From Selaginella moellendorffii (lineage: Eukaryota > Plantae > Lycopodiophyta), in the NCBI RefSeq assembly GCF_000143415.4, contig NW_003314261.1:5296360-5360359 (forward strand): a stretch of 64,000 nt of DNA. The letters run 5' to 3'. The notes below the pieces were generated by a model. That model was not told the origin of the DNA. It saw nothing but the letters and a program-made list of their open reading frames with translations, and did no database searches. A program made the translations under genes and the position numbers. Below are positions 28,757 through 51,894 of this stretch, piece after piece (positions within the stretch are counted from its first letter, which is position 1; each line of letters starts with the position of its first letter).

Positions 28757-28864
28757 CCACCTCGGATATAGACTTCAAGCTTGCGGACCGAAAGCTGATC
28801 GACGCAAAATTGAGACAACGGCAGTGACGCAGTTTAGCAATTTTAATTAGGTCGAAGCGGAGCT

Positions 28865-30286
28865 ATGGCGGTGGTGTGGATGAAGTGGGGGGACGAGGCG
28901 CTGTGCTTCCCACTCCAGGACGGCGCCAAGATGATGGTAAGCTCCATCGCTCGCCACTGGGGCCTGGACCCGGACTCCCTCCGCATCGCCGACTGCGCTC
29001 TAGTCCCAGACGCCGACGGCAACTCGGTGCTCTCTCTTGACGACATGGTAGCCTTGCTCCAAGACCAGCCCGACTTGGGCGATGGTAGCAGCCACGACCA
29101 AGCACTCCTCGTCACTGGCCGCCGCTGCTCTGCCACCAGGGATGCGTGCTCGGCTTGCGATCACCCGGCCGTCCAGGATCTCATCCGACAGCGAGACGAG
29201 GAGGATCTGGTCGCAAGGAAGAAGCAAAGGAGAGAGGCCGCAGAGTCGAGGCAGCGCAAGGCATTCCACAACAGTGTCAAAAACCTGTGGCCGTACGTCA
29301 AGGAGCTCAAGGGCGGTGGCCCGTTTAGGCGCTTGAGGCCAGAGCAAGCTCGCGAACTGCTACAGTCCAGGGTCTCCAAGATGGTGGCTCGCTTGCACTT
29401 TGTGGAGGGCGATGACGAGCCGAGCAACGACAACTATAGGGGCATGGCCGCCTTGGTGAAACCCGATGGATCTTGCTTCACCGCCGCCTCTTGCTGCGAC
29501 CGTAGCTCCACCTCTGGCAGGCATGTCCTGGTGTTCTCGGATCCAGCACTGGAGTACGAGTGCGTGGTGTCTTTCAAGGATCCGATCGCCGTTCTGACGC
29601 CGATCGAACCTGGCGTCATCTTCAACTATTGCATCAACTGGAATGACTGGTTCTGCAACTCGGGTAGTCCCTATAGCTGGAAGCGCGACCCAGAGTCCGG
29701 GGACATCAAGTGCGTGTCGGGCATCTTCCTGGACGGTCAAAGCCTTAGCAGTGGCGAGTGCAAGCCTTACCGCAAGGTGATGCTTCCGTTCGAGATGGTG
29801 GAGGTTGGTGCTCCAGTACTTGATAGCCGTGGAAATCTTGGCGGAATTGTGGTGGAATTCGAGGAGATCCCGGCTCGCAATACTCGGTCCAAGAAGAATT
29901 ATGGGCAGAGGAAGTTCGATATGATTAGCATCCGTGACTTCTACAGCAAGATGATCAGCAGGAATCCTGACTTCGCGAAAGGTTTGGTTTCCGGCCTCCC
30001 TTCTTCTTGGCAGTTTTAACTTAACTGTAACTGTCTGATGTCCTCAGCGCTCGGTGCTGCCCTTGAGCACCGGAAAGCAGCCGTTTATGAGGCATGTGGC
30101 GGTACTGGTCTGACGACTCTTTGGAAGGATTGGATGACAACTCATCCCGTCGGAGGTAAGATACATTCTGGAATACGTGACTTTGACTCCGAAGGTTGTG
30201 GTTTTTATCTGACACAGAATTTGACATTGATGAGCCTTGAAGTAAGAGGTGTAGCCCTGTCAAGGCTTTTGGAGATCTATCAATGA
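28865..30286 (+). CDS. Two-exon gene (28865-29981, 30048-30286; ~451 aa): N-terminal header domain, charged helix, degenerate trypsin-like domain, C-terminal tail
   Basis: Long GC-rich ORF. The GT-AG phase-1 intron sits at the same position as in the paralog at 46390-47712. Trypsin-like pattern 'CFTAASCC...IAVL...GAPVLDSRGNLGGIV'. Confidence 0.8.
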
Positions 30287-31169
30287 GGAAGACCTCCATT
30301 CAGGCTACGTAAAATCTTTAGCTATTATAAGATAGGAGTGTTTTGGAGCCGAATCCAAAGCTCTTGGAGACCTGGCATTCATTTGCAATGTTTTTGTTTC
30401 AGCCGAAAAGGAATATTCGGCATCTTCTTGCAGAGATAATTTCTTGGATGGAGCTGGATTGCTGCTATGGCTGCCTGGATCGCTTGCTTGCTTGGCTCAC
30501 GCTGCTCTCTCGTTTTTGTGTGTGTTGGTCTTTCGTTTTTGCAAAGATTTCAAATGAGCTCCTGACCGGAGGAGAAGGAAGAGGAATAGCCACTTGATCT
30601 TGTTCTTTTTCTCTTCCCAAGAGGACTACGAGCTACGCCACCAATATTTACAGGCTTGTCCCAAGGTAAAGTTTCTATGGCTCTTGCAACTCCGACGCAT
30701 CTGGCACGTAAGGGATGATCTCGAGCATCAATCAAGCGCCCACAACTCCACTCCTTTTGTATCTTTGAACACGCTCTTTCTCACTCCCATATGTGGGACG
30801 ACCGCGCACTTCTCACCGCATTGAAGGCAAGGATTGGACCACGCTGTGGTGTGAAGGACGCGAGCATGGATCGCCCAGCCGATGCCGAGAGCTGCACGGC
30901 ACGCGGGGAAGGAGGCAGCACTTGTTCCAGGGGAAGCTCGCACTGCCGCCGCAGCGCCGCTTAACAGGGCCGCCCTCTTGCACACCTACATCATGTCATC
31001 AGCCTCGCGAAATTTCAGAAGTTCTTCTTGACATACTGCATTGCATTTTTAATTCGCCAATTGATGTGGTACGTCTTTTTTACATTTGAAGTTTTTAAAC
31101 CAGCTTGTGCTTTTACTTCTCAGGCTTTTACAGACCGAAGAACTTGGTTTCTGTTTGCTTCTACTCGGT

Positions 31170-31830
31170 TATCTCTCCTGGCAGTACTCTTGCATTCGCA
31201 GCGAGGCACCATGAGAGATTGAAGACTCTAAGCTTCCGGAAAGCTGGCCTGGAAACGCTTCAGTGTTTCCACTAGTGGAGCTTAAGGTAGGAATTTCTAA
31301 ACTTCTATAATGGCTTTGGAACTTTAAATAACAACAAAGGCATAAACTCGATCCGTCCAGTGGTATTCTTGCCGGGGCGAGTGAATGGGCAGTACATTAT
31401 CGAGGGTTTGTCATCGGGATTTATGTTTGTTCTTGGTGGAATGAGGCAAAACAATTCTCTCTGTCCCATGCTCCAGTTCTCACCATTTTCAGACATAAGA
31501 AAAGAAAGAAAACTTTTACACATTTACTGCTTTTCTTCTTTGCCACGCACGAGGTCTCCTAGTCATTTATCCAAGGGTGCACTTACCACTTACAAGAATA
31601 ATTAGTTCTAAGACACTTAGCAAACTGTCCTATCAGCGTTGGATTCTGTGGAATGATGTTGAGCTTGGATCGGAGATCATCTTCGTTATGCCTGGACGAA
31701 TTATGCTAAAACAAGCCCGTGTTGGGGTACTGGACGAGGCCACTGCATCCGTGAACAGTGCTACTGATGGAGTGATTTCCACCATCGCTCGCCTAACTGT
31801 GGTGGACAGCGACTAAGTCCTAAACGATGG
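31170..31830 (+). pseudogene. Mosaic of ABCC/MRP transporter fragments (both strands) and an OSTC/DC2 fragment
   Basis: 'YSCIRSEAP*EIEDSKLPESWP' (+), '[29 protein letters not shown]' (+, OSTC-like), '[16 protein letters not shown]' (-), 'VLDEATASVNSATD' (+). Confidence 0.8.
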
Positions 31831-31952
31831 TATTGTTTTTGTTTTGGTGATAAAAATCTTTTTAATAAAAAAGAGCTCACATTTCTTCTATTTCTGGATC
31901 ATCAACTTAAGTCTTTGTAATTTCAGAGCCTTTTAAGTTCGGTTGGCTCGTG

Positions 31953-32312
31953 TCAGACGCTACAGCGGCAAATCGGGCAAGTGTGTTTCTTGGAGAGCCA
32001 CATCGAGATACAGTCGCGATGGTAGAAGTGCTTGCACTTGGGCAACACATTCACCTCTTGCCCATCGCCAAAATGCCCAAGGCAAATGGCGCACTCCTCT
32101 CTCCCTCGCTCCCTCACGCTGTAGAGCTCCAGGGGAAGTATCACCGAATCCATGCCATTCTCAAGTTTCTTCTCGGCCTCACCATCCCTGGTGGAAGCTC
32201 CAGTGTCATACCCCGCCTCACCAAAGCTGCAATCTCCATCTTTAATGCACAACCAGCAGCTCCAACCCGCAAACCACGCGCCACCCAACAAGCAACAGAT
32301 TTCAGACATCAC
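31953..32312 (-). CDS. ATL-like RING-H2 E3 ligase (possibly partial)
   Basis: 'GMD..ILP' GLD-like motif and 'CAICLGHFGDGQEVNVLPKCKHFYHRDCISMWLSKKHTCPICR'. The 5' end is uncertain. Confidence 0.75.
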   Translation of the reverse strand: MMSEICCLLGGAWFAGWSCWLCIKDGDCSFGEAGYDTGASTRDGEAEKKLENGMDSVILPLELYSVRERGREECAICLGHFGDGQEVNVLPKCKHFYHRDCISMWLSKKHTCPICRCSV

Positions 32313-32869
32313 CCACTATAGTCGGTGTGATAGGGTTTGTCCTTTCACCTCTTTGGGGTTCTTTTATACCGGTCCGCCACCTTTTCCGATGAGCCTTTTG
32401 CTGGCACCGTACCACCGTACAGCGCTATAAACCGGCGGCATGGCACCAAGCTCGCCATGACGGTGTCTCTCCCCGCTTGGATCATGCAAGAGCTTGCGAA
32501 GGTGGCCCTTGTTTTTCAATTCGTTCACGCCACCAATGTACCTGAGGAAGAGAACAAACGAGGACGGACTGTGATGGAGAAACTTATATAGTTTCGAGAT
32601 CGTGGGGGTGGGGACGTACCTTCCATCGATTCGACTGTAGCCATCGCCCAACTCCGGCTCCATCATGGAGACTCCTTTGTTCTCGAACGCAATGCTGTGG
32701 ATCGCTGTGGTGTTGCTGCATTCCTCGTCGTGTGGTTTGAACTGGAGCATGAGCCTGTCCCTGGATCGTCGAGCTCGAGACCTCCGAGATCCAGTCTTCG
32801 TTTCGGATTTGCTCCATCACACTTGGCGGCGTTGTCTCTGGTGGAAGAAGAAGTCACGCATTGAACCTC

Positions 32870-33225
32870 AGCTCCAATTCTCCATCTCCCAGATTTTTCA
32901 AGAAATTCATCTTCAAAACAGATGCTTCTGATGCTGGAGTGGGAGCTATCTTGAAGCAAGTGCATGGATTAATAGCTTTTGAGAGCTGGAATTTCTCGGA
33001 GGTGGAGTCTTGCCAACCAGCAAATGAACAAGAGATGCTGGGAGTTATCCATGCAGTGACAAAGTGGAGGCACTACCTGCTGACGGTGAGACTCATTCTC
33101 TGAATGGATCATTTCAGTTTCTCCTCAAGCCAACAAGAAGCGAAAGAGGTCGATAGAGCGGCTGCAATCACTCGACTTTACTATTGAGTATAAGCGGGAA
33201 AACATTCTTGACAGCGCATCCAGAT
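32870..33225 (+). mobile_element. Isolated gypsy RNase H fragment
   Basis: 'FKTDASDAGVGAILKQ...EQEMLGVIHAVTKWRHYL' and 'LQSLDFTIEYK'. Confidence 0.85.
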
Positions 33226-33933
33226 AGCCACGCGTCAGACAAGCAATAGGGTTGACTTTGACCACCATAGCTTTGAAAAACACATCTGCCCGTTCAAGTT
33301 CCTCGGCACCAAAAAGCCCAGTGTATCGTTTCACCTGCAACCGAGTGAGTCACAATACAAAGCAGTTCAGACGCACAGGTACAGGTACACAGTACTCGCC
33401 ACCTCAAAATATGAGTTAAGTTAGTCGTTTGCAGCAACCTTTCGTCGACCCCGTGACAAGAGAACGCCTGGATGATCTGCTGGCTATTTTCATCAGAGCC
33501 CGGATAGTGGGCAAGCAAAGAGCAGATTCACTATGTCCCTGAGTATCTCGAACGTCAACTCGTGGCCTTCCTTTTCCACCGGCCACTTGTGTTTCACAAC
33601 ATCCTTGGGTATGGTCAGCAAAACAAAGAACTAGATTGACAAAAAGAGAATAAGTCGCCTTGATGGCTTCATCAAAGGAGAAGAAGGCAGCAACCTGAAG
33701 CGGGGTCATACAGTATCAAACTAAACACAAACCCACCTTTCCCCACAGATATTGGGCGCTGCTTCCTAATTCGTCGTCTCCAAGACAGTCGAACTCGTAG
33801 AATCTGAATATCAACTGCAGAAAGACAAAGAGAAGCAACACAACTTAGTTATAAAACACACCTTAACGAGCTTCAACATAGAATCATAGCACTGACTTGT
33901 ATAAACAAGGCAATCACAATTTATCGCCAACTC

Positions 33934-36900
33934 TGTTAGGTGCCAGCTTTGACTACGTGGTCAACGTCGGTCAAAGGGAGACTCAAGGTATATTAAGGCA
34001 TGTTAGGGTAAGGGACTTAACCTACCCTAGCACTCACAGTGGAGCGGTGGCGTAGTGGAGCTTTTGAGGTAGCTCGGGGGTGGTTGGGTGGTGAGGAACC
34101 TCAAGAGGTGGTATAGCATAGTCTAGGGCGACTAGATCTCTGTCTTTTTGCGCCGGATCATAACATTGGTATCAGAGGAGTTGGTTGCGATGGCTGACCA
34201 AGCTGAATGTTGGAATCCTATTGTCGATGGTGGTGCCGATGAAGCTGCAAAGATTTGAACCATTCAAGATGTGGTTCATGAGCTGTGAGCCCTTATGGCC
34301 AATCTTCTTCTCATGATAAGTCAGATACAAAAAAGTTGCAAACTTTGTAGCATGAGGATGACGGAAACGAGGAGGAAGAGACTTTCGATCATTGCTCATC
34401 AGCTCAACTCTGTGTGGAACAAGATGGAGCTCGAGGATACGCATAAATCAACTTTAATGCTGGAGGGCATGTTTCGTGGCGATCCAGTGTGGATTTTACT
34501 GGATAGTGGGAGCGATGACAACTTTGTTTTAGCAAAGTTTGTTGTGGAGCATGGCCTGGTCACACGCGGAGTTCTTCCATACACAGTGGAAGGTGCAGCT
34601 ACCTCTGCTCAGCATTTCGATGCTTGTGTCGAGGGGCTAGAAGTGTTGGTTGGCAAAACCACACTTGTGGAAACTTTTTATCTCGCAGATATCCATTGTG
34701 TAGATCTCATTCTTGGGATGCCATGGTTGGTGAAGGTGGATTCAGAGATAAAGTGGAGTATTAAGCGTATCTCGCTGGAGTATAGTGGCGTTAAAGATGT
34801 GTGGTTTGGCTAGGGCATTTAGCCACCAGTTGTTATGCTCTCTGCTACATCTTTGAAGTGGGTTTGTCGTAATGGAAAAGCACTTTTGAGTTACTTGTTG
34901 TTTGTTTGTGACTTGGGGGACAAAGGCACGTGTGGGGGAGAAGCAACTGTACGGGATGTACTTGATGAGTTTTCTGATGTTTTTCCATCTGAACTTCTTT
35001 ATGGATTGCCTTCGTTATGAGGTGTGGAGCATGGGATTACATTGGAGCCGGGGATGCAGCCAATTTATTGGCGTCTATTTCGGTTAAGTTATACGGAGGA
35101 GCAAGAAGTTCAACGACAAGTCAAGGAGTTACTTGAGTTTGGATTTATTTAGCTAAGTAAGTCTCCATTTGGTGCTTCGATCTTGCTTGTGAAGAAGAAG
35201 GACGGTTCAATGCAAATGTGTATGGACTACCATGCTTTGAACAAGAAGACAGTGAAGGATAAAATGCCGATGCCACGTGTGGATGATATCCTAGACAAGC
35301 TTGATGAAGCACAAGTGTTTACCAAGATTGATCTGAGGAGTGGATATCATCAGATTGCAATGGATGATGCATCTATCTCCAAGACGGCATTCAACACAAG
35401 CTTCGGACATTTTGAGTTTATAGTTATGCCGTTTGGTTTGACGAATGCACCAACCACATTTACTCGGTTGATGACAGAGGTATTTGGGCGTTATCTTCAT
35501 GAGTTTGTGGAGATTTTCCTGGACGATATTCTTGTTTTTAGCAAGAATATGGAGGAGCATAAGGTGCATTTGTGCAAGGTTCTTTTATTACTTTGAGACA
35601 GCAAATTTTATGCAAAGAAGAGCAAATGTGAATTTGCAAAGTTGGAGGTGGAATATCTAGGCCATATTTTGACATCTAAAGGTGTCAAGACAGATCTAAG
35701 GAAGGTAGCTGTGGTGGAAAACTGACGTACACCGACTACAGTGGCTGAGTTGTGCAGTTTTCTTGGTATGGCTAGTTACTACCGACATTTCTAGCATAAG
35801 TTTGCAGAGGTGGCTATTCCTTTGACGCGGTTGTTATGCAAGAATGTGCCATTTGAGTGGAAGAAGCCACAAGAGGAGAGTTTTGTGGCGCTGAAGCGAT
35901 TGTTGAGCGAGACTCCAGTGCTTCGCATTGCTGATCTATCGAAACCTTACGAGATTGAAAACTCCTGCAATCTCTAAACTGGGAGGAAACGTCCACACAA
36001 GATCTTCCTAGGAGTTTCAAATCTAATCTAGTCTCTAAATCTAAAACTACACTACAAGATGAATGCACTTACCTGCTTGTGCCAAGCCAAGTAGAGACTA
36101 TGAACATGTGCTTGAAGGTGTTAGTCCCACGCCTTTGATCCCTTGAAGGCGGTGGGTAAGTAAGACATTGCCATTGCCATGAAGAGCCAAAGAGATAAGC
36201 AGAATGACGATGTATTGCAATGTATTTTGTATTAGGGATAAGTCTAAAAACATTCTAAGTCCTACTTTTATAGTTGCTACTGCTCACGTCAAGGTTAGGA
36301 ATACAGTCCTAACCTTGAACCTCTCAAGTTTACTTTCCTAAGCTTGAATCCTCGAGCTTGTCTTTTTCTCCCTTCTCCAGAGATGACATGCGATGCGAGT
36401 GGTTATGCACTGGGAGGAGTTTTCATGCAAGAGGGACAGCCTATTGCATATGAGAGTCAAACTTTGAATTCCGCAGAGCAACGCTATTCCACATATGAGC
36501 AAGAGTTACTCTCTATTGTTCATGTTTTGCGGATGTGGCGGCACTATCTTTATGGTGCAGTGTTCGTGGTGTTGACAGATCACAAACCACTTGTGTATCT
36601 TTTCACACAAAAGGAGTTGAACACTAGGCAAGCTTGTTAGATGGTCAAACTCATAGAGTTTGGGGAGTTTCCTATTGAGCATCATCCAGGAAAATCAAAT
36701 GTGGTGGTAGATGCTTTATCTCGTGTTCATCATGTGATAACGTTACAAACACGATTTTGTCATCATTTGAGTAAGGTGGTTAGCAAGTTTGGGCAGTTGG
36801 TTGAGCATGCTCAGGCTCAGGATGCTGAGGTGGCCTCTTTGCGAGACCAGATGGAAGCCCTTTTCTCATTGGTGGATGGAATTCTCTACTACAATGGCCG

Positions 36901-38388
36901 TGTATATTTGCCAAGGGTGGATATGTTAATTACTCAAGTTTTATTCCACTATCATGATTGTCCAGAGGCCGGTCATTTTGGGGGGAAGAAGACGTATGAG
37001 TTAATTAAGCACAACTTTTATTGGAGGAATATGAAGACTGATATCCTCAAGTATTGTAAATCATGCGAGCTTTGTCAACGGGTTAAAGTGCCACGGGAGA
37101 AGCCAGGGGGACTCTTACAACCTTTACCTATTCCTCAAAGCCATTGGTGTAGTATCTCTATAGACTTCATCACTTGTTTGCCATAAACACAAAGGCAAAA
37201 GGAGCAAGTATGGGTCATAGTGGATCGGTTGACGAAGTATGTGCGATTGTTGGCTTTTCGGAAGACTGTCACTACCTCAGACTTAGCTGCGGTTTACTTG
37301 GAGAAGGTTTTTCCTGATTTTGGTTTGCCAGAGGATATCATTAGTGATCGAGATTCAAAGTTCACCAGTGGATTTTGGAAAAGCTTTGCAAAGGCTATGC
37401 AAGTGACTTTGAAACTCTCGAGTGGAGATCATCCTCAGGCAGATAGGCAAACTGAGCGTGTGAATCAGGTGGTGGAGGATATGCTACATTGTAGCATTGG
37501 TCAAAGGCAAGGACAATGGGATCTATATTTTCCGTTGATGCAATTTTCTTACAACAATAGCCAACACAGTGGAGCAAGCTAAGTCCTTACTGTGCCATGT
37601 TTGGAAGGCATCCTCGAACAGCGTTGGAGTTAAGATTGCATTTGAGTAAGGACGTTCAAGATAAGCTTGATTTCGAGGCTACTAATCTGGCCACAGAACT
37701 TGATGAGATTCTGGTGGTGTGCAAACATAATTTGCAAGTAGCTCAGAATAGAGCGGAGAAGTTTGCCAATGAGCATTACCAATTCTGGGAATATAAGGTG
37801 GGTGATCTCGTCTTTGTGCAAGTGATCTTTCCGTCAAGTGAGCGGCGGAATACCTTGGTGCCTTTACAAATAGGGAAGAGTGATAAAATTTCCTATCGAT
37901 ATGCTGGTCTATATGAAGTGCTAGAGCGCATTGGTAAAGCGGCTTATCGGGTGCGGCTGCCAGCTGGGGTGAAAATTCATCCGGTATTTTATGTCAGCCA
38001 GTTGAAAGGTGTACTATCTCGGAGTGAAGGGCCCAATGCCTCCTTGATGTATACGGCTGTGGAAGATGGATCAGGAGCTTGAGCAAGGTTCCCCAGAAAG
38101 GGTGATCACCGGTACAACTCGTCCTTGGGACAAGGACTTTGTTAGGGGGGAAGAATTGTTAGGCGCCAGCTTTGACTATGTGGTCAACATTGGTCAAAGG
38201 GAGGCTCAAGGTATATTAAGGCATGTTAGGGTAAGGGACTTAACCTACCCTAGGGCTCACAGTGGAGCGGTGGCGCAGTGGAGCTTTTGAGGTAGCTTGG
38301 GGGTGGTTGGGTGGTGAGGAACCTCAAGAGGTGGTGTAGCATATTCTAGGGCGACTAGATCTCTGTCTTTTTGCGCCGGATCATAGCA
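33934..38388 (+). mobile_element. Complete-ended Ty3/gypsy element D (232 bp LTRs), gag largely absent, pol degenerate
   Basis: LTRs 33934-34165 and 38157-38388 (about 12 mismatches by eye), TSD AACTC, PBS TGGTATCAGAG at 34167, PPT AGGGGGGAAGAA. PR LLDSGS, RT FLDD, RH and INT present. Confidence 0.97.
35956..36379. mobile_element. Solo LTR (424 bp) nested in the RNase H of element D
   Basis: TG...CA termini and perfect TSD GAGAT. Removal restores 'KPYEMTCDASG'. Confidence 0.9.
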
Positions 38389-39704
38389 AACTCGATAATG
38401 TCAAAAGCTCCACAGATCAGCTGGGTCGCGTCGATGGCCATGAGCGCTCTTGCCATTTCAAACGCCTCCTGCAAGTCCAAGCCCATGACTCCGTCCTTAG
38501 CATCCATAGACACTACAAACAAGATGGTTACGGAAAGCAAGAATGAATGAACTGGCCTCACAAAGAAAATCTCTCCCGCAATACACAAGTGCAGAGAAAT
38601 CATTTGGCACTTCATCAAAAGAGACTGTATAAAAGAATCACAAACCTGGATGGAACCGACACAGCAGTTACGATTACCCATCGACCAATAACTGTTTGCA
38701 GCCTGATTAAGGTTCTCGGGCTAGGGTGGCCTTCACCTGCGATGTGATTGTCAATCCTCGAGAATAATAGCTGCATGCAAGCTTACCTGAACATATAGGC
38801 CTTCCATAAACCCTGCAGACACACAAATGGCTATGTTGCACAAATGAGAAAGGAGGAGCTACCAGATGCGCAAAAGGTTTTAACCGCTGGTGAGCAGCTC
38901 AAGGACTTCGCTCTTGGAGCGTGAATCGAAGAGCTCCAAAGTGTCAAGCATCTTATAAGAGATAATCACTGACAACTGCTCCAAAACAACAAAAGAATCT
39001 CTATCTAGCTAACGTATCGTGACCAAGCAGCGTCCGGAAAACTCTACAGCTTGCATCGTAGGCTTTGCCACTGAAAGCTTCTTCAAAGCACTGCAGCAAA
39101 ACCAAAGTCAGCCAGCTCCTCTCTACTAGCGAAGCCTACTGGGATAAGTAAAGGTCAAAGGTCCTTTCCCACATCCCTTAGCTTGATTGCCCCCAATCTC
39201 TTGCTGAACTCTACTCTGCCACTTTCAAACATCTGAGTGAAACCCCAATGGAAGAAAAGGTTTATTATTGAAGAGCATACATTAAGGGATACATGAAGGA
39301 TTCATGGACAGGTCAGAAGTACGTCGGGGATTCAAGCTGTGGCTGGAGGTCAAAATGTGGGAAAGGACCTTTGAATGGAGCATAACTCCCACTCTATTGG
39401 AACATCTGTCTGGCTTGGCAAGATTGTCAATGGCTGAACAGGACGAGCAAACCAACCTCCATGTCATGCTGTGAAGAATCCCTTACATGCATTGAGGACT
39501 TGTTTAGTGAGAATGTAACTAAAAGCATCAATTTAAATTTCATCCACCCCAAAAAAAGTAAACAGGTCTTCCAAAGTAATGGTGAGGCCAGTTCATTCAG
39601 TGCAAGGTAAAAGAAGTGTAGTAGCTAAAGTCAAAAACTACAATATGCTCATGTTCAAAGCTTTCAAGCGTTGGAAGCTTTGAAGGATCTCAAGGAGGAA
39701 TATG

Positions 39705-40667
39705 TGTTAAGCACTAGATTAGGATAATAGAATAAAGAAAAGGCCCTGTGATTACCCTTTTATTCAGTTGGTTTAGGGTGTAAGAGATAGGATTTTAACA
39801 TTGGTATTAGAGATTTTAAACAATGAAAGTAAACAACTTGAGAGACAATTTATAAGGTTTAAATATAAAGGGAAAGGGCCCATGAACAATAATGCATCTC
39901 TTTTTCTAATCAGTTAAGGATTTTGTGATACTTGGGGTTAAATGTCCTTGGGTTTGAATAGTATTAGGTTGGATGACCTCCCAGAAGTCCAAACTCAAGA
40001 GTGTACATTTAGTATTAGAAAGGGTCTCAAGTCTGACTCCCTTGGTTGGTTTAAGGGAATCGCACCACATATTAATTGATATTTGGTAAGTTTAATTTGT
40101 TCTCTCTTGGAAGTCTAGACTTAGGAGCATACATTTAGTGAGAGGGTCTTAAGTCCGATTTTTTTGGTTAGTTAAAGGAATTGCATCACATGTTGATTGA
40201 CATTTGGTAAGTTCAATTTGCTTTGGTTGAACTCAACCCGAGGGGTAGGGTGTCAAGAAAGCAAGGCTCTCGGAAAAGTTGTAGCTCTCAACTTTTGTTC
40301 ATGAGGGCATGAATTTATAGGAAAGCATAGTGGATTGTATGCAACCACAAAGAATGATTTGAGAGATAATCTATAGGGTTCAAATATAAAGGAAAAATAC
40401 CTATAAAAAAGTGATCACCCCTTTAACCAATTGGCTTAGGGTGTAAAGGATAGGATCCTAACATTGGTATTGGAACTCAATTCTCTTGGGGTTTGGTAGA
40501 CCCCAAGAGAAGGACCATGGTGACCAGAAGGTGGCCTAAGTATGATTGTGGATAATCATTCCTTGACAAAAGGAGGATTGTTAAGCATTAGGTCAAGATA
40601 ATAGGATAAAGAAAGGGCTTTGCAATAAAGTGATCACCCCTTTAGCCAATTGGATATGATCTTAACA
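39705..40667 (+). mobile_element. Degenerate TRIM-like tandem array of ~90-100 bp LTRs
   Basis: TGTTAAG...TTAACA units at 39705-39800 and 40579-40667, and a third ending at 40463. PBS-like TGGTATT follows two of them; PPT AAAAGGAGGA precedes the last. No coding sequence. Confidence 0.65.
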
Positions 40668-42609
40668 ACATGGCAATAAGATCTTTTAGCAATTCATGGG
40701 TAACTATTTTCATCCATTGTTTTGATAAGCTAACTAATGACTCAAGATACATGAAAAAATATCATCCCCATAGGCTTGTTAACCAAACCTTTTTCAACTA
40801 CTATAAGATGGTGCCAATGGATAGTAGCAATAAAGATCATAACACTAAGAGGATACTTGTGGACAGCAACAACAAGAATGACGACATCACATGGGCATTC
40901 ATTCCTATATATTGGGATAACAAACAGATTTCATGACTATGATATCTATTTTGGTTTTAGTTGTGGAGAGAACACAAACTTTGGCCAAGTTGGATGGTGG
41001 CAGCCATTTCCTAATTATGTGCTATAATTTTCTAAAAAAAATAAATTGTATTATAAAATTTTACAAATGGTAAAATATAATAAGCAAAATAATATTTCAA
41101 ATTATACTTTCTTATATAAAAATCATTTTATAATATTTATGTTTTGTGTTATTCTATGAATTTATTTCTCCTCATATTTTCACCAAAAAAAGATATAATA
41201 TCAAACTATAAGGCTTATAAATATATGTTTCTTTTGTTTATTCTTCATCTGTAGTATTTCCTTCTCCTAGCACATTAATCATTTATAACTTATATAATTT
41301 TCATTCTTAATTTAATGTTGAGTTGGGTGTTTTTTAATCTTCTTCATACTAATTTAGATGTTGAGCATGTGTATGAAGTTGAGAATATTGCTTTTGTTTC
41401 ATTGGTAGAATCTTTAATCAATTCTAGTGTTCAATATTCCCATGTTAAGTCACTTTAATTAAAGTTTCAAATTGAGTGTATATCCCCACATATGAGTCCC
41501 ATGAAGAGCCTTTATTTTACTATTACTGCTAATAAGTTTATAAATTCCCTTAAGAGTGTGGACATTTTTATTGATTTTCTAATCTTAAATGTTGAGTTAT
41601 ATGTCGAGGAGGTTAAACAATGTGATTTTTTTGCTTATATTGTGGTGACCAAAGTATTTTATGACATCTTATTTTTCAAACTTTAGACATATATCCTTTT
41701 TTTTATTTCCTTATTTCCATATTGCCAACTACTGAAAATTCCTCTTTCGATACTATATTATTTGCTTTTTTTCTTCCATAATGGTTTTTCCATTTTTTCT
41801 CTCTTTTTCCTTTTTGCCCCTGATTCTTTAAACTTTTTTTTCTTCGAAGGGGGTAAAGAGGACAAATGATGGAGTGAGGATGAGTAGATGTAATAATGGA
41901 GTAAGGATAAATAACATGGATTATAGAGTGAGGTGAGTATAGTGAATTCAAACAGAATATCCAACCTTGATGTTTTGAGGTCGAAAAAATATGATAGTGG
42001 AGTGAAGTTAAACATAAATGGTAGAATGAGAATGAATGTAATAAGTCTAAATAAAGTTAATGCTTTATAATGTTTTTTCCTTTGAGAAGGGGATAAAGAG
42101 GATGTGGAAGATAAATAGAGTGAGTTTAATCTCCCATATGTAGTGTTAGACAAAAATAAAGTTGTGAGTCCAAATCAACACAAGTTTAAGATATTGATCA
42201 AAATGAAGATAAAGAGGCAAGTTTTGCTTATGGTTGTGAGTCCAAGTTAACAATTGTCTCAAACGATTGTCAGCAAACAGATTTGGAGATGAAATGTAAC
42301 ATTTGTTGCAATGGTGCTTTATGGACTGCAATGGCTTCAAAGTCTCTTGTTTAAATTCAAATTATGGCTTGAAGGTTGGTTTGGGCATTTAGCAGTTGTA
42401 CATGGAGTTGCCTTTGGTTCATCAGGATTCTCTAGTCAATTGATGTTTATACTATAAATTTGGGTTTTGTTTTATTTATGGTTATTAATGGTGGTTTTAG
42501 GAGCTTTAAATTCTTATAGTAGTCTTCAATTGCCTAGCAGAAGCTCTAGATGTTCCACTTGACTCATCATCATCACTTTCTTCATCTTTTGGACAGGAGG
42601 ATAGTGTTA

Positions 42610-42868
<259 letters not shown>

Positions 42869-43195
42869 TATTTATTTAAGAAATTATTATAAACTCTAAA
42901 TTATTAGTAATGAGGTTTAGATTCCCAAACATATATTACCATTTCTAGCATTACAATTATTATGAATACAAAGATAAGGAGCAACACAATTTGGTTCTGG
43001 TAAACAAAATGTACTAATAGACTAGAGTGTAATATCAAAACTATTATAAAGAACAAGTTTTCCATCAATTTTTACTTAAAATTAGTTTAAGATTAAATAT
43101 TACAAAACTTTTTGAATAAATAATGGTTTTACAATCTCATTGAGAAAAAATAGACTTCTCTAGATACAAACTTTGATTAGGTATTGCAAAATGTT

Positions 43196-43295
43196 NNNNN
43201 NNNNNNNNNNNNNNNNNNNNNNNNNNNNNNNNNNNNNNNNNNNNNNNNNNNNNNNNNNNNNNNNNNNNNNNNNNNNNNNNNNNNNNNNNNNNNNN
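43196..43295. other. Assembly gap (100 N)
   Basis: Run of N. Confidence 0.99.
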
Positions 43296-43305
43296 ATATA
43301 TGCAA

Positions 43306-44254
43306 TGTGAGTGCATGGAATATGGAAAGAGGAATATAAAAAATGTGCATATCAATTAGCCCAAAAACCTTAGCTTATATACAGGAGCGAGTGGTCCAAA
43401 TTGAAACCAATCCAACGGCTACCAAATTCCCACTACACTAATATTAGTATATGGCATTGTAGCCATACACTTAGCCCTCACATCATCCCCTCCTCTCGGA
43501 ATAATAGAAGACTATTAGGGTTCTCTTGTAGATGGATTGGGATTGGGAAGAACGTCAAGAGGAGGCATTAGCAGATCTATAGGTGGTATTAATTGCTCCT
43601 AATCCCTTGGTATTAAGTGTTTCAACCGTTACACATGCATAATCTCTGAAGGATCGGTCTACTATACGTCATGCCAAACTTTATAAACTTGTGGTCCAAC
43701 TTGCCGCAACACCTGATACAGTCCTTTTCACTGAGCAAGGAGCCCCTTAGATAAACCACGTACCGTAAGATGGGGAAAATGGACTAACACCAAATTAGCA
43801 CCATTGTTGTCCCATTTGTACGTGGCCTAAGTGTTTAGCAAACTTTGCTCAGACAAGTGGAAGAATGCTCATCAAATACTGATCCCACAACCTAGCATTA
43901 GTAGCTTGTGGCAATCGCAAAGGTAAACCTAGCTCTATTGGTAATATTGGATCATGACCATATAAGAGTTTATTTAGTGAAGCACCAACAGAACTTTACA
44001 CCCCTGTGATATATGCATACCAAAAAGATGGCAAATAACCATCCCAAACCAAATGCTGAAAGTTCACATACTTCGTAATCATCCCTTTGAACGTCTGAAC
44101 AAATCGTTCCACCAAACCATTTGATTGTGGATGATAAGCACTCATGAAAGTGTGGCATATCCCCAACCGAGATGTCAAAACATGAAATGCCTTAGCCATA
44201 AATACAAGACTATTATCTGAAAGAATCTGCTCTAGACAAGAATGCTGGAACACC
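43306..44254 (-). mobile_element. 3' end of a short-LTR gypsy element (integrase C-terminal part, PPT, 3' LTR 43306-43482)
   Basis: 'SAYHPQSNGLVERFVQT' motif, PPT GAGAGGAGGGGA, LTR homologous to 27999-28174. Confidence 0.85.
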
Positions 44255-44495
44255 TGTCAGGAATCCCCCAATTCTTGCCACATTCCTGACTCTCGCCAGA
44301 TTCCTGACTTGCAACCACATTCCTGACTCTCGAGACACTTCCCTATTCTTGACTCTCTAATTTTCCATACAATTCCTGATTCCCAAATCACATTTCTGAT
44401 GATGATGTGGCACCTCCTCGACCTTAGCTATATTTAAGCCGTCCTCGATCCAAGAATGGTGGAGCTTTATCAACCTATAATATATAGAGGTTAAC
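44255..44495 (+). mobile_element. Partial LTR (U3) of the chromovirus family at 21407-26645
   Basis: Reverse-complement match to 26380-26645 starting TGTCAGGAATCCCCC. Confidence 0.88.
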
Positions 44496-44564
44496 ATATT
44501 TTCAGACCCATAGACTAAACCTCCAAAGCAAGGAAGCTCTTGTAACTCAAATTGGTACATAGGA

Positions 44565-45907
44565 TTAATTCGTTTTGACTTTCTCACTGAACTTTGCCAT
44601 TGTTTCAGGAGGAAGGAACACCGTGACTTCAATGGCTTTCCCACCTCTCGGTGACGGGTCGTAGAAGCAGAAGCCGTTCCACAGCTTCGTAGCGTGTCGA
44701 ACAGCGGCTGGTTTCCCCCATCCAAAGTCCAGACTATACATTGGAAATCTTGGAGAGCTGCCACCCCAGGTATCCACACCATCTGTCACGCCTTTGCTGA
44801 ACGGGTTACTCCCTTTGGTGTTTTCGTTGTAGATGGCAATTGCGGAGCGGATCTCATACTCGTGATTGCCTCGTGGACAACAGCTCCCGTGAATGGAAGG
44901 CCTCCAGTCACAAGTTCCCCGGCTGTGGACTCGGCCAGCGCACAGAACACACAGTTTCCAAAGTAGCCCGCCAGGAGAGGAGTGCTCAGCCGGCTTCTAC
45001 AGTTGAGTGGAAGCTGATGGCTGGTTTTCTGAGATGCTGGAAGATGGCGAGCCTTGCAAAGTGCTATCCAGACCTGTGACGCCACGACCTCGAACGCTGA
45101 GAAACTACCCGACGCCAAGAACTTAAGCCTCTCGATAGTCCCGTCGTCGAACTCGAAGATCTTGGCCTCCATGCCATTGGAAACCTCCTCGAAGACATAT
45201 GAAAGGGAACTGGTCGGGGTTATGCTGGAGAACTGCTCGTGCTGCTGCTCGAAAAACCGGTCGTGAGTTGGAGGCATGGAGATGGAAAGGCCTCGACAGA
45301 TCTCGGACCAGGAACACATGAATTGCCACAACGAGCTGCCGTCCATGACGAGATGATCAAACGACCAAGCAACACACACGCCTCCGCAGCGAAACTCAGT
45401 CACCAGTTCTTCACGAGATCAAACGCGAGAAAAAAGTCTTTTTGCGGGATCTTTACCTGGATAGTGATGAAAGGTATGTTGGTCGACAAGCCACTAAACT
45501 CATAGTTTCCTCTTTTGATCAGCTTGGAGGACCACGGCCGGGGCTGGGAGTAATCGAGCTCCTCCAGGGAGACTTGCATCAGCGACGCAGAACTCAACGC
45601 CGGCTCCGCTGCAAGAGATCACAGGTCTGTCTCCCTCGTTTTGGATCTCTAGCCTTCCAGCTAAGGGATAGAAATCTACCAGGACTTTGGCCAAGCACGC
45701 CTTCATCCTCTCAATCAAGCTCTCGTTACTGCTACTGCTACCGCCTTTGGATTCGAAGAAGCAAACGAGCTGGAGGTAAAGCATGCTGCTTCTCTTTTGC
45801 ATTATGTCGAGAGCCGTGAATGGAAGCTTGGAGCAGTGACCATCTTCCAGTTTCTTCTCGGGAGAGATCTTTGAGACTTGGCGCTCTTGCACTTCAAAGC
45901 TCGCCGT
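44565..45907 (-). pseudogene. BAHD acyltransferase pseudogene
   Basis: 'FYPLAGRL', HXXXD 'HLVMD', 'GYFGN', 'DFGWG'. Frameshift near 45570, stop at 44786, apparent start codon ACG. Confidence 0.9.
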
Positions 45908-46389
45908 GGCCGGAAGTGCGAGACTAGAGAGGGAAGAACAGCACTAGTTTGTGTGTCCCAGCTTTTGGCATCTTTTAGGATATGCATTACTCTGAGAATT
46001 TACCATCAATACATATATATATTCTGGGATTTGAAAACGAACCACCCCAATATTTACCGGCAATCAATGATCACCTCAAAGCAATACAAGCAGTGCATTC
46101 CAAGGTGCAACAACGCTTTAGAAGGTGTGATAATATATTCTAGTGTGTGATTTTATTAGTTTTTTCTAGGCATTGAGAATGCTCTCTAAGGCAAAAGGTT
46201 TGCTTCTTTCTTCTCTTGTTTAAGACTTAACTCGTGGAAGTTATAGGAAGTCATGGTCAAAGCGACGACGTCGTGGAGAAGGCTGCCATTCACAACTCTA
46301 GGTATATTTCTTAAAAATTAGCTGCTCCTATGCCTGGATGAGGCGAAGCGTCCGTTTTGCGAGCATGGCACTCCAATCTCGCTTAAAGC

Positions 46390-47712
46390 TCAAACTCTGT
46401 CAAGAAAACAAAAGAAAAACTCAGAGTTCAATTCCCTGATATCCTTACCTTTCAGAGGATGAGCTTTCGTCCAATCGTAGCAAACAGTCATCAAACCAGC
46501 AATGTCCACACACCCGACGTAAACGACGGCTTTGCGGTGCGTGAGCCCAGCCTCGAGAGCTGAAGACAAAAAGAAACAACAGTTAGACAGTATCAATCCT
46601 CCGCCAAGAATATCCAAACCTTTCCCGAAGTCGGGATCGTCCTCGACTCGTCGTTGGAACTTGTCGCGGATGGCAGTCTGATCGAGCCTCCTCTCTCCCT
46701 TCTTCTTCTTCTTCGTCGATCGAGTATCACGAGCCGGGATCTCCTCGAATTCCACCACCACTCCGCCAAGACTTCCTTCATCGTCAAGGACAGGGGCACC
46801 AACCTCCACCGTGCTCTCCACCGGAAGCATCACCATGCGGTAAGGCACGCACTCACCAGTTGTGAGGGTTCGATCCTCAAGGAAGATGCCCGCCACGCAC
46901 TTGATGTCCCCGGACTCTGGGTCGCGCTTCCAGCTGTAGGCATCCCCCGACCTGGCAACCCAGTCAGTCCAGTTGATGCAATAGTTGAAGCTGACGGGTT
47001 TGGTCGGCGTCAGGATGGCGAGCTGTTCGATCGCTTCCTCGTAAGTCACCACGCACTCGTACACCAGTGGTGGATCCGGAAACACCAGGACGTGCTTGCC
47101 GGAGGTGGAGCTACGGTCGCAGCACACAGCGGCGGTGAAGCAAGATCCATCGGGCTTCACCAAGGCGGCCAGGCCCCTGTAGTTGTCATCGCTCGGCTCG
47201 TCGTCACCCTCCACAAAGTGCAGGCGAGCCACCATCTTGGAGACCCTGGACTGCAACACGCTGCGAACTTGCTCTGGCTTCATGCCCTCTGGCTCCAGCT
47301 CCTTGACGTACGACCACAGGCCCGCGACGTTGCTCATGAACGCCTTGTATCGCCTCGACTCTGCGGCCTCTCTCCTTTGCCTCTTCCTTGCCACCAGATC
47401 CTTCTCGTCTTTCTGCCGGATGAGATCCTGGACGGGAGGGTGCTCGTAAGTAGCGGCAGAGCAGCGGCGGCCGGTGATGAGGAGCGCTTGGTCCCGGCTA
47501 CTACCGTCACCCTGGTCCTGGATCATCGCGGCGATGTCGTCGAGGGAGAGCATCGAGTTGCCGTCGGGGCCTGGGACTAGAGCGCAGTCGCCGATGCGGA
47601 GGGAGTCCGGGTCCAGGCCCCAGTGGCGAGCGATGGCACCCACCATGAGTTTGGAGCCATCCAAAGGGAATCGCAGCGCCTCGTCACCCCGCTTCACCCA
47701 CACCACCGCCAT
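46390..47712 (-). CDS. Paralog of 28865-30286: header domain plus degenerate trypsin-like domain; probable 60 bp intron at 46560-46619
   Basis: Identical blocks 'IARHWGLDPDSLRI', 'LQSRVSKMVARLHFVEGDDEPS', 'YSWKRDPESGDIKCV', and a conserved GT-AG intron position. Confidence 0.82.
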   Translation of the reverse strand: MAVVWVKRGDEALRFPLDGSKLMVGAIARHWGLDPDSLRIGDCALVPGPDGNSMLSLDDIAAMIQDQGDGSSRDQALLITGRRCSAATYEHPPVQDLIRQKDEKDLVARKRQRREAAESRRYKAFMSNVAGLWSYVKELEPEGMKPEQVRSVLQSRVSKMVARLHFVEGDDEPSDDNYRGLAALVKPDGSCFTAAVCCDRSSTSGKHVLVFPDPPLVYECVVTYEEAIEQLAILTPTKPVSFNYCINWTDWVARSGDAYSWKRDPESGDIKCVAGIFLEDRTLTTGECVPYRMVMLPVESTVEVGAPVLDDEGSLGGVVVEFEEIPARDTRSTKKKKKGERRLDQTAIRDKFQRRVEDDPDFGKGLDILGGGLILSNCCFFLSSALEAGLTHRKAVVYVGCVDIAGLMTVCYDWTKAHPLKGKDIRELNSEFFFCFLDRV

Positions 47713-48975
47713 AGCTCGCTTAGATCAGGAACCCTAAATCTGCTCGCGACGGCATTAAGTCCTGAAGCGATCTGGGAATGGGAAAGCGAAGATTTCATTG
47801 ATATGTTTTGTCGCCATCACTCCAACCGAGCAAAACGTCGAGATGTCCATTACCATGCAGGTCATTGACGATTCGTGAAAGTCCATTACCATCCAAGGTT
47901 TAATTTTGCTTCTCCTGTCTTCTGTATGGATTTGGGAAGACACGGACTACATTGGCAATCTTTTTTAAAATGATATTTCTAAATCTTTTGATTTCATGTT
48001 TCATGGTGGGCATATATAAATGAATGAATGATTCAAGGAACTTTCTTCTGGGATTAAAAACGATTGAACAGGACACGCACGCTTTTCGTCACACCAGAGT
48101 TTGCAAACCTTGCTTGGCTACGCTTTCTCTTTGCCTTTTCGGCTGCCACCACTAAGAGGAGCCCCGGGAGGCGGCGGGACCGCCTCGACCCCTGCTGCTA
48201 CTGCCACCTCTGCCGCGGCTGCCACCATCACCCGGCCACGGTTGCTAACTCCCCCATCACCTCAGCGGCTGCTGCCACCGCCGCCATCACCTCGACGGCT
48301 GTTGCCACCTCCACTGTTCCGCTCCCACCAGCTGCTCCACCGCTCGTACTAGCTCCACGTAGAGCGCTCATGCAAGCGTAAGATTTTCCCTACTAGAGCG
48401 CTTCTGATGTCGATCATCTTTTCACGGCCCCAAAATGCTGGAACTTCAATCCCGCTGGAGCCACGCTCCCTAGCTCCTAAACAACGGATCGCTTGCCTGA
48501 CAAGATCCCCAGAAATGTAGCTCCTCCTCGTCAAGAGCCCTAATCTGCGGGTGTAAATATCATCTAAGATATTCCTTAAAGTAAATCTTGCAATTTTATT
48601 ACTTAGACCCCTAACACTTCTACAGTATAAAGAGTACTTTAGTTCCATGCAACACGTTCAGGTTTTTTTTAGGTTGAGGTTATTTGGATTTGTATGAAAG
48701 AGAAAAAAAAGTTCATATTACTGATTTGGCCAAAAAGGCCAGCGTTCATGCTCCAGGTTGTGCTGCAAAAAGAAAAAAAACTAAATTTGAACTAATAGTG
48801 CACAGTTGGCATTATACGCCAATTTCTCCTAGTATCATCCTAAGACTGACAAATGGCTTGAAGTATGTAATACTAATTCTAATTGCAACTTGCTTATGTG
48901 TCACTGACTAGCATCTCTCAGTCTAGCGCCCTGTACCGCTGGGACTTTCTCCGTGTGTCGTTGCTCCTTGATCGG

Positions 48976-49508
48976 TCAGAACTCCTTCAGAGGATACACT
49001 TTGTCCTCCTCGTCCGTCGCGTCTCTCTGCGCGTAGTACTGCTGGTCGACCTCCGGGAGGTATGCCAAGAAGTGATACCGCCTCCCTAGCTTCATCAGCT
49101 CCGTGCTTACTGGGAGAAAAGGCATGTCCTTTTCGATCTGCAGCATCGCGATCTCATGCTCCTCATCCACAGCAACAAACGTAGCGCTCATCCTGGCCGG
49201 ATCCGTGGGGAAAAGAACTGCCCATTTGCACCGGAAAGGGTCGTAGCCGGAGAGAGCAGGGAGTGGCACGAAGCAACGCCTGCAAATCAAGGCGAGGGAG
49301 CAGCATGGATTTCTAGCCAGGAATCAAGAGAAAGTTCTCACCTTGGATCCACCATGACGACAGTCGTGATCGTTGTGACAGAAGAGAGGAAGCTCTCCTC
49401 GTCAGTCTTGAGGTAGAGCCGACCCAGTGCCGATCGTGCATCGCGGAAATCATCGTCTTCCACCTCGAATCTTCCATAGCGCCGAGCCCTCTCGCTGCTG
49501 GAAGCCAT
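48976..49508 (-). pseudogene. Truncated, divergent trypsin-like family member (exons 49508-49342, 49279-48976)
   Basis: Spliced frame MASSSERARRY...ALGRLYLK...VVMVDPRRCFV...WAVLF...AVDEEHEIAMLQI resembles the first barrel of the two paralogs. Confidence 0.5.
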
Positions 49509-49600: not shown

Positions 49601-51030
49601 TTGGGGCTGATCAGCAGCGTGCTTGGCCTTTGTCTTCGGCTATTTCCTCTTCATCTACGTTACGCCCGTGGATGTCAAGGTAGGGATTCTCGCCACGAAT
49701 GTAGCTAGATTTTGAGAAATTTCTGATCACTTGGCTCGCAAGATCCTACAGGGAGCTTGAAGCCAAGCCGCTACGCCGGAGATTCCTTTAGTCCAGAGTA
49801 AGTGCCAATCTTTCTTTCCTCTTTCATGTCGCATTTTTCTAAAACAAGTTCTTAGCGGATCTACCTTGGCATTGCTTACTCTGGCTTGCAAATGTAGGCT
49901 ATTTGCAAAAGACGCTGCTAAACCATACTGGGATACCGGGCGAAGTTCAAGCTACGATGTCAACTTATCGATGGGAATAAAAGGAGCTAGTTCCTACTCG
50001 TAAGTTTTTCGATGGTTTTCTCTTGGATCTTCGCTAAAGGAAGTATCTACAGGTGATAGCACTGGTGGAGCCGATCATTTCCACCATCTTTTTGAGGACC
50101 GAGAACCGTGTGGCTCATCGCTCCTTGAATCACCAGCCAAAGTATAGCCTCGTCACCAGGGCCGGAGAAGGCTACAGCGTGACTGCGCGCTGTCCTCGCT
50201 CGAATTCGAGTCCTCGACATTAATCACGTTTGTAGGTAGTGTTGTTCCTTTGTTCTTGTACGTGCTGTCTTTGACGACTTCGTCTCGCAGGCATCAAAGT
50301 GTTTGATACTCACGTTACGGTCAAGGCGTTTGGCCTCTCCAGCTTGGTAGCTACATCGCTTTTCTGTTCTCTCTCTTCCAGCGTCTGAAATTCTTTCTTG
50401 CATTCGGGAATGCTTCGCAGGATCATAGTCTCTCTAAGGCAAAAGGTTTGCTTCGTTTATCCTTAGCGATCAAGGATTAAAGTATCGGAAATGTACTTGT
50501 GGCCCAGAACAATGGAAATCAACGTCATAGAAGATCCGAGGTAAGACTTAGCGTGGAAGTCGTACATATACTCATGAATACCTCTCAGAGCGCTGTTGCG
50601 GAAAGTCAAGGTTGTCGGGGCGACGGGAAGTCTGCCTGACCCATACGCGAGTGGTGAAAGACCGTTTGCCAAGAAAACCGTGAAAAAGAACACTCTCAAT
50701 CCAAATTGGAACGAAACCTTTAACCTTTGGAATGTCAAGCTCTTGAGCTATTTGTTTAACTGGGCAAAGGTACGTGACGAGGCTTCTGATTCATTGCAAG
50801 CCCATCCAAGCTAGTGTTTACGGGGAGAAGTTGCTAATGCCGTCGAAAAGCTCCAGAAGGAAATGGTTTGGTGCCGAAGACTTGGAAGGCAAGCATCACA
50901 CGAACTGAGGCTCGCGTTTAGAGGCAAAGCAAAGAAAACCAAGGTACGCAGAGTCCTCCCTTGATTTGGTTTTTGTTCTTTCTCTGTTGTCTTTGCTGGT
51001 GGTTTCTCAGGCTATAAAGAAGAACAGAGA
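49601..51030 (+). pseudogene. Degenerate tandem duplicate of the synaptotagmin gene
   Basis: Collinear exon and intron matches to 51895-53880 (e.g. ggatgtcaaggtagggattctcgccacgaatgtagctagatt), with start TTG and many deletions. Confidence 0.92.
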
Positions 51031-51894
51031 TAAAGAACAACCTTCAAGTTCGAAAGATCTCTTAAAGAAAATATAACAAAAGAGGTTTGAATGAGACTGT
51101 ACTTGCGTTATCTTGACATTTGTACTAACTTGGCTGCCTGCGCATACCATTTTCGCTCAAATCTCTCGAGCACTGAGTTTTCTCCTCCAATGGCATTGAA
51201 GCTTACCTCGGGCAATGCTGAAGACTTCCCTGATGAGTTAAGTTCGTCTTTTCTTCGTTTTCACAGGAAGAACTGGTGTTTTCACATGTTGTTCCAGAGG
51301 CAAGATTCAGAGCTTACGCACGAGGAAACTCCGGCTACATCGTGAAGGCAGCCACAAGAAAGAAAGATCCTAGCTCATGGTCTCCTTTCTTTCAGGACAC
51401 TAGCGGACGTAGAAGCAACCTGTCGAAAGCTCAAGTTCAAGCGGTTGATTTTCAAGCCGAGTTTCTAGAGCTCGAAAAGCAAGCTCTCCAATCCAGTTTG
51501 CAGGCATTTGTTTCGTTCAGGGTGACATACACACTTGCCAGAGGAAGCCGCGCGAACGATGGCATCGCATTGTGCTCTCTTCGATTATTGTTAACTCTAT
51601 TATATATTTATTACCAAATTAGAGAGAAAAAGAGAAAGAGAGAGAGAGTGTTTCTCTATATCAAAATGTTAAGAGCGGCTAGTTATGTACTAAGTTCACG
51701 GACACACGACCAAGTGCCCTGCCACTTGTCCTTCGATGGGAATATCCATGTCTTTGTTGACAAAGTGTCGGCGGATATTCCACTATCCAATACTTAGTAA
51801 AGCGCGTTTCAGGGGAGAGAAGTGTGAGGCTTCTACATATGGACACGAGGCGCCGGTGAGAGAATAGGGTTTTTCTTTTCTTTCGCGTGCGGCG

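Follow-up and report, generated by a model that had tools for sequence, protein, structure and literature searches.

A 64-kb window of Selaginella moellendorffii DNA ("the window" denotes this whole stretch of 64,000 nucleotides) carries two paralogous genes, designated copy A (28865-30240, + strand) and copy B (46383-47712, - strand), whose products are predicted to place a ubiquitin-like (Ubl) header and a basic helix in front of a trypsin-like domain that has lost its catalytic residues. The copy A product is identical to the RefSeq protein of LOC9642649 (P0004, 415 aa), and the gene was verified exon by exon against it, with the translation of exon 1 reproducing residues 1-372 exactly. Copy B was searched as an unspliced open reading frame (ORF). 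The two genes are laid out as follows, with domain names taken from the predicted structures:

28865..29981, + strand: copy A (LOC9642649) exon 1, encoding the Ubl header, the basic linker, the dead trypsin/HtrA-like domain and the start of the helical tail
28865-29128, + strand: copy A Ubl header, aa 1-88, within exon 1
29129-29380, + strand: copy A basic helical linker, aa 89-172, within exon 1
29381-29878, + strand: copy A dead trypsin/HtrA-like domain, aa 173-338, within exon 1
29489-29491, + strand: copy A codon of Ser209, the equivalent of the catalytic His
29804-29806, + strand: copy A codon of Val314, the equivalent of the catalytic Ser
29982-30047, + strand: copy A intron 1, 66 nt, GT-AG, phase 1
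30048..30155, + strand: copy A exon 2, helical tail, translation exact in P0004 from residue 374
30218..30240, + strand: copy A exon 3, EFDIDEP plus stop, completing the family-wide C-terminal motif W..HPL.EF
46620..47712, - strand: copy B exon 1, encoding the Ubl header, the basic helix and the dead trypsin-like domain, 94% identity to P0001
46619-46560, - strand: copy B intron 1, 60 nt, GT-AG, reading through in frame
46449..46559, - strand: copy B exon 2, placed by alignments
46383..46396, - strand: copy B exon 3, completing ...KEFEL and the TAA stop; P0001 ends alike

Both copies thus consist of three exons separated by two short GT-AG introns at equal positions and phases; those of copy B measure 60 and 52 nt and leave a coding sequence of 1218 nt in frame. 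A preliminary description of this region, made by reading the sequence, had placed two intact paralogs here, and this was borne out: the two proteins are 69% identical, and the similarity at the DNA level (77%) is confined to 28852-30160 versus 47724-46444, i.e., roughly to the coding region alone. An N-terminal domain (~88 aa), a basic helix (ARKKQRREAAESRQRK in copy A, ARKRQRREAAESRRYK in copy B) and a β-rich domain are common to both copies, as had been described. The gene model proposed at the time was right about the second-exon tail and the conserved intron (same codon, same phase) and missed the third mini-exon; the end it gave to copy A, 30286, is an ORF artifact, as exon 3 of LOC9642649 stops at 30240, and its 440-aa ORF for copy B arose because the 60-nt intron 1 stays open in frame. 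No further family member beyond A and B was found in the window by tblastn.

Next, we examined the domains of these proteins one at a time. Folded alone, the header reached a predicted local distance difference test score (pLDDT) of 86, with strands at residues 3-8, 11-18, and 81-84 and helices at 25-32 and 58-64. With VIA, a structural aligner independent of Foldseek, the top 50 entries were all Ubl domains (Z 6.1-4.3), led by the TBK1 ULD and including Rad23, NFATC2IP, and the N-terminal domain (NTD) of TDP-43. Foldseek likewise matched the header to ubiquitin, Ubl, and TDP-43 NTD structures (E 0.05-0.5), and its Atlas features pointed to TDP-43_N (score 0.92). The Z scores are moderate, and it is the uniformity of the match lists that carries the call: on the predicted structure, the first 88 residues are a ubiquitin-like β-grasp domain, in agreement with the preliminary description. 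The header ends in ...(V/I)TG(R/K)(R/K) and runs on into the linker, and the di-glycine needed for conjugation is absent. It is also the best conserved part of the protein, with a mean identity across the seven subfamilies of the family (see below) of 45%, compared to 32% for the trypsin-like domain, 22% for the linker, and 20% for the tail.

The fold of the body was assessed on a full-length AlphaFold model of P0004 built on an alignment of 18 family sequences (mean pLDDT 65, with 80-87 in the header and mostly 60-80 in the body). Foldseek returned 481 PDB matches at E<=1e-3, topped by AlgW, DegS, DegP, and HtrA1, with a best E of 1.6e-7 and target TM-scores for body matches of up to 0.63. 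Using VIA, the top 50 entries for the body were all proteases of the PA clan, i.e., of trypsin fold, and 112 chains scored Z>=8; the match to DegS-deltaPDZ reached Z 13.9 with 183 of 202 residues aligned, alongside HtrA3 (13.8), MamO (13.8), the FAM111A SPD (13.4), plant Deg1 (13.4), and Deg5 (13.3). The PA-clan double β-barrel is therefore recovered by both aligners on a predicted model of moderate pLDDT, and the trypsin fold suggested earlier is supported at Foldseek E 1.6e-7 and VIA Z 13.9. The language-model look-alikes of the protein were Trypsin_2 clusters, with scores of 0.93-0.94. Sequence-level searches gave no such signal: none of the 18 members, copies A and B included, matched a Pfam family at E<=1, the isolated header and isolated body had no Pfam match at E<=10, and PDB sequence and profile searches returned only chance matches to CBS-domain hairpins (E>0.3). 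An hhalign comparison of the family with Escherichia coli DegS/DegQ was not significant, and its full-length run aligned the header spuriously. A viral origin was also considered and rejected, as BFVD matches were no better than those to cellular HtrA (E 1.2e-6 versus 1.6e-7), with no sign of an endogenized protease.

To locate the former active site, we used the hhalign alignment limited to the domain, which is collinear with E. coli DegS/DegQ from end to end at a probability of <1%. In copy A, the catalytic H96 corresponds to Ser209, D126 to a gap or Pro, and S201 to Val314, while the three positions of copy B are occupied by Val (His), Gln (Asp), and Val (Ser). The earlier claim that the catalytic His and Ser had been replaced thus holds for both copies, as does the suspicion that the Asp is not retained. 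The loss extends to the whole family: across the 18 proteins, the His column is without His (S, A, V, G, R, K, or Q instead), the Asp column without Asp, and the Ser column without Ser (V, R, T, C, L, or P). Meanwhile, the spacings G-x(8)-G-x(3)-T and G-x-P-x(5)-G-x(3)-G are the same as in DegS, and five residues (G315, P317, V318, G323, and G327) are invariant family-wide, all of them in what was once the Ser loop or in the hairpin that comes after it. This suggests that the geometry of the cleft was kept while its chemistry was lost.

We then evaluated whether the two genes are maintained. The ratio of non-synonymous to synonymous substitution rates (dN/dS) between copies A and B is 0.51 (NG86; bootstrap interval 0.37-0.72), with lower values in the header (0.27-0.21, NG86-YN00) than in the β-rich body (0.46-0.43). 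All eight exon-1 indels separating the copies are multiples of three (8/8; chance 1.5e-4). Exon 1 is 82% identical between copies, compared to ~48% for introns and flanks, which are effectively unalignable, and in neutral simulations at the observed substitution level the frame was still open in only 0.4-4% of cases. Both copies are clearly under purifying selection, of a relaxed kind. The preliminary description had read the open frames as a sign of selection, and the dN/dS of ~0.5 (not near 1, for the single pair A versus B), the in-frame indels, the exon conservation, and the simulations all agree with that reading.

The family as a whole was seen only in S. moellendorffii. A profile search against 1.84 billion representatives returned seven clusters only, all from this species, and a word-indexed search of 5.8 billion clusters, queried first by copy B and afterwards by the alignment of 18 sequences, found no species besides S. 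moellendorffii, consistent with the lineage-specific distribution proposed at the outset. Overall, the family comprises ~10-12 loci in seven subfamilies, 22-30% identical to the copy A protein, and all family matches share one architecture, in full or as fragments (P0010, and P0021, which consists of a partial header and linker). Databases already list these genes as encoding hypothetical proteins, for which a structural explanation is now at hand; a literature search combining Selaginella and pseudoprotease returned nothing relevant.

Given this combination of a protease fold, a family-wide loss of the triad, and purifying selection, we propose, with a probability of roughly 60%, that copies A and B are functional members of a family of non-catalytic, Ubl-headed scaffolds of trypsin/HtrA fold, i.e., pseudoproteases. 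The protein would consist of four parts: a Ubl head, a long basic helix, a trypsin/HtrA domain devoid of triad, and a helical tail ending in W..HPL.EF. Cleavage of peptide bonds by the serine-protease mechanism would not be possible for these proteins, which would most likely act as intracellular binding scaffolds. A peptide or protein would be bound as ligand by the former active-site loop, still conserved as E-x-G-A-P-V ... G-x-L-x-G-V-V, and the Ubl head, as the most conserved part, would tether the complex to a partner or mediate self-association, by analogy with Ubl and TDP-43-NTD-type domains elsewhere. No signal peptide is evident on reading the sequence, and two basic clusters resembling nuclear localization signals (NLS) can be picked out by eye, one starting ARKKQRRE (residues 117-133) and one KK-rich (~341-350, after the body). 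From these features we infer a nuclear or cytosolic, and probably nuclear, protein; the basic helix noted in the preliminary description is confirmed, its NLS-like label being a reading by eye. A role in defense or as a decoy would be pure conjecture.

Several points weigh against the scaffold interpretation. The mapping of the triad relies on a collinear and statistically weak alignment together with motif spacing, and no sequence-profile method, whether Pfam, hhalign, or PDB profile searches, ties the body to trypsin families. The full-length model is moderate (mean pLDDT 65) and was reached by only one of five models. The dN/dS of 0.5 denotes relaxed constraint and comes from one gene pair. 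The P0007 subfamily carries a Cys at the nucleophile position (IECGAPV). Finally, the NLS were read by eye.

The Cys of P0007 is also the natural starting point for an alternative in which the proteins are still proteases with a non-canonical active site, e.g., a Cys nucleophile as in viral 3C-like enzymes. The invariant Gly and Pro residues of the oxyanion loop and the presence of viral chymotrypsin-like proteases among the structural matches would fit such an activity, but the nucleophile column is V, R, T, C, L, or P depending on the subfamily and Val in both A and B, the His and Asp columns never contain their residue, and no other residue is conserved family-wide at the site, so that retained proteolysis appears highly improbable. 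Alternatively, the copies may be non-functional leftovers, either decaying duplicates or transposon-carried ORFs open by chance. A transposon ORF was rejected because A/B homology stops at the coding sequence and no terminal repeats are shared. Simple decay would be compatible with the retrotransposons and the truncated BAHD gene surrounding A and B, with fragments such as P0010 and P0021, with a relaxed dN/dS of ~0.5, and with the absence of the exact copy B product among database matches. It is harder to reconcile with introns kept at identical positions in A and B, with exons conserved next to saturated introns, with the frame-preserving indels and the rarity of open frames in neutral simulations, and with a family that is low-copy and deeply diverged instead of the product of a recent burst. 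We consider this explanation distinctly improbable.

The preliminary description had noted a layout recalling Crinkler/RHS-type (CR) proteins, and a further alternative is that the family descends from these conflict proteins, or is a plant-internal version of them, with a disarmed trypsin toxin module serving in defense or as a decoy. As summarized in PMC5289972, which reviews Zhang et al. 2016, the headers of CR proteins are Ubl domains, the enzyme-derived modules behind them include trypsin peptidases in some CR proteins, and land plants are among the organisms with CR proteins. The predicted architecture of the family matches this layout at the fold level; moreover, the family is lineage-specific and divergent, with some decayed fragment copies, and the region around A and B holds gypsy elements and a broken BAHD gene. 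However, the Crinkler N-terminal model of Pfam matched none of the 18 members (E<=1) nor the copy A header (E<=10), no LxLFLAK-type motif was seen in the aligned header, and the supposed toxin module is dead in every member, the triad being absent. The header is tied to one dead body and not shuffled: fusions to other C-terminal domains, which the preliminary description had suggested looking for, were found neither in the local-mode profile searches of the 1.84 billion representatives nor in the word search of the 5.8 billion clusters. CR membership thus comes down to a resemblance, and we regard descent from CR proteins as unlikely, leaving the non-catalytic scaffold as our preferred interpretation.

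Comparison with known systems places this family next to, and apart from, several others. The best structural matches to residues ~151-402 are the HtrA/DegP/DegS proteases (MEROPS S1C), including plant Deg1/Deg2/Deg5/Deg9. Unlike in these enzymes, the PDZ domain is absent here (no Pfam PDZ match) and the body is followed by a short helical tail; the triad and any Trypsin_2 Pfam match are lacking, a Ubl head and a basic helix stand in front, and no signal or transit peptide is evident on reading. The MamO protease domain, the RsgI9 S1C domain, and protein Z, all non-catalytic, have the same fold (VIA Z 13.8, 12.6, and 11.8, respectively) and likewise put a protease fold to use without catalyzing cleavage, but differ in sequence, organism, and partner domains, and none has a Ubl head. 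A parallel in layout is found in FAM111A/FAM111B, vertebrate nuclear proteins involved in replication and antiviral defense that combine a UBL and a trypsin-like serine protease; the scheme of FAM111A consists of ubiquitin-like domain(s) and a C-terminal trypsin-fold domain (PMC10920703). The FAM111A SPD is a top structural match (Z 13.4) tied with many other proteases, i.e., the likeness is at the fold level only, with no detectable sequence homology and no sequence match to any PDB chain. FAM111A is active, with an intact triad, a PIP box, and a region binding single-stranded DNA, whereas the family studied here is without triad; the two are alike in basic, nuclear-type features, which here were read by eye.

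The preliminary description had taken for a truncated, distant member of the family what is a small annotated gene, located 1.26 kb upstream of copy B and encoded on the same strand:

48976..49508, - strand: SELMODRAFT_402908 (P0019), annotated gene, 156 aa, two exons (49508-49342 and 49279-48976)

This gene is better considered separate, since no significant similarity could be detected: P0019 scored -2.9 bits against the hidden Markov model of the family, under the best shuffled controls, and hhalign gave a probability of 0.2%. In Pfam searches, exon 2 yielded a sub-threshold Trypsin_2 hint (E 0.16) and the full protein had no match. Two weak collinear matches link P0019 to P0001/P0002, one between its residues 74-110 and their residues 206-242 and one between its terminal YPLKEF and their HPLKEF, and a further weak match covers the "DLAVL" strand of DegS; these similarities are suggestive but prove nothing. 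In the Ubl/dead-protease family, the HPL(K)EF ending falls at the junction of exons 2 and 3, and its likeness to the YPLKEF of P0019 may reflect distant kinship, exon capture, or chance. No second copy of P0019 was found in the window.

Both copy B and P0019 have close relatives elsewhere in the assembly: P0001 (SELMODRAFT_440677), 94% identical to copy B, is encoded on another scaffold of 2.9 Mb, and P0020, 92% identical to P0019, is on that same scaffold. Because P0001 and P0020 share one scaffold, the 2.9-Mb scaffold region would be either the other haplotype or a recent segmental duplicate of the region of copy B and P0019. If it is the alternative haplotype, P0001/copy B and P0020/P0019 differ by 6-8% in protein between haplotypes; S. 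moellendorffii haplotypes are usually much closer than this, the alternative being a recent segmental duplication. This pairing leaves room for a further idea, namely that the Ubl-headed dead proteases are one half of a spikemoss-specific two-gene module in intracellular immunity, with an unrelated-looking trypsin-fold family as the other half. The 156-aa gene upstream of copy B could be the partner, the pair being found together also in the second haplotype or duplicate, and the module might sense pathogen proteases or protease inhibitors or act as a decoy for them. We see this as a long shot; if true, it would be a component of plant innate immunity without a seed-plant counterpart.

The surroundings of the two copies are rich in transposons, and the plastic region with decayed neighbors described at the outset was recognizable in the gypsy elements and the broken BAHD gene. 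An apparently intact Ty3/gypsy retrotransposon lies at 21603-26210 (- strand), whose gag ORF encodes 340 aa and whose pol ORF, of 1008 aa, includes protease, reverse transcriptase, RNase H, and integrase. A degenerate Ty3/gypsy element sits between A and B at 33934-38388, its pol split into several ORFs; it is bounded by a 232-bp direct repeat (33934-34165/38157-38388, 94.8% identical) resembling a pair of long terminal repeats. Two ORF pieces immediately downstream of copy B (44786-45892 and 43996-44253, both - strand) are all that is present of a BAHD-type acyltransferase (Pfam Transferase); they cover profile positions 11-100 and 139-333 of 434. The gene was probably truncated by a transposon, because the pieces abut an integrase-like fragment. 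An intact-looking RING-H2 finger ORF (31953-32312, - strand; zf-RING_2 E 3e-14) is located 1.7 kb downstream of copy A. The assembly is interrupted once between the two copies:

43196-43295, no strand: assembly gap between A and B, in AT-rich non-coding DNA

No family gene is broken by this gap, which is separated from copy B by 3.1 kb and from copy A by 13 kb; all that hinges on the scaffold join is how A and B are ordered and oriented to each other. It is inside an AT-rich island (40000-44000, GC 0.28-0.32) with a long (TA)n-type microsatellite, especially at 42550-42879. The stretch that begins just past the gap (43303-43480) recurs at 27996-28172, and 44254-44493 recurs inverted at 26381-26646; such repeats probably represent transposon fragments to either side of the A/B interval.

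Farther out, a ~1.7-kb repeat with internal tandem sub-repeats occurs in three copies that are 80-88% identical (3436-5096, 9319-11092, and 17915-19643), one of which adjoins an RNase H-bearing ORF (19418-19960), making this likely a retrotransposon region. On the other side, a local duplication (50468-51031 versus 53026-53886, 71-84% identical) is overlapped in its 53-kb copy by an ORF at 53433-53966 that reads as C2-domain/synaptotagmin-like. Beyond it come ordinary genes, one for a Mei2-like RRM protein (~57.5-60 kb) and one for a kinesin motor (62 kb).

To our knowledge, trypsin-fold pseudoproteases have been recognized in animals and bacteria and little studied in plants. The present work is a structural annotation of already catalogued genes, and its weight is accordingly moderate. 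It would nonetheless explain what a group of "hypothetical proteins" of the reference lycophyte genome are, and it offers a tractable case of the repurposing of a protease fold. The combination of UBL and protease in FAM111 forms a convergent parallel. The family would be a clear-cut instance, preserved by selection, of a protease fold put to non-catalytic use, which either arose in the lycophyte lineage or changed past recognition there.

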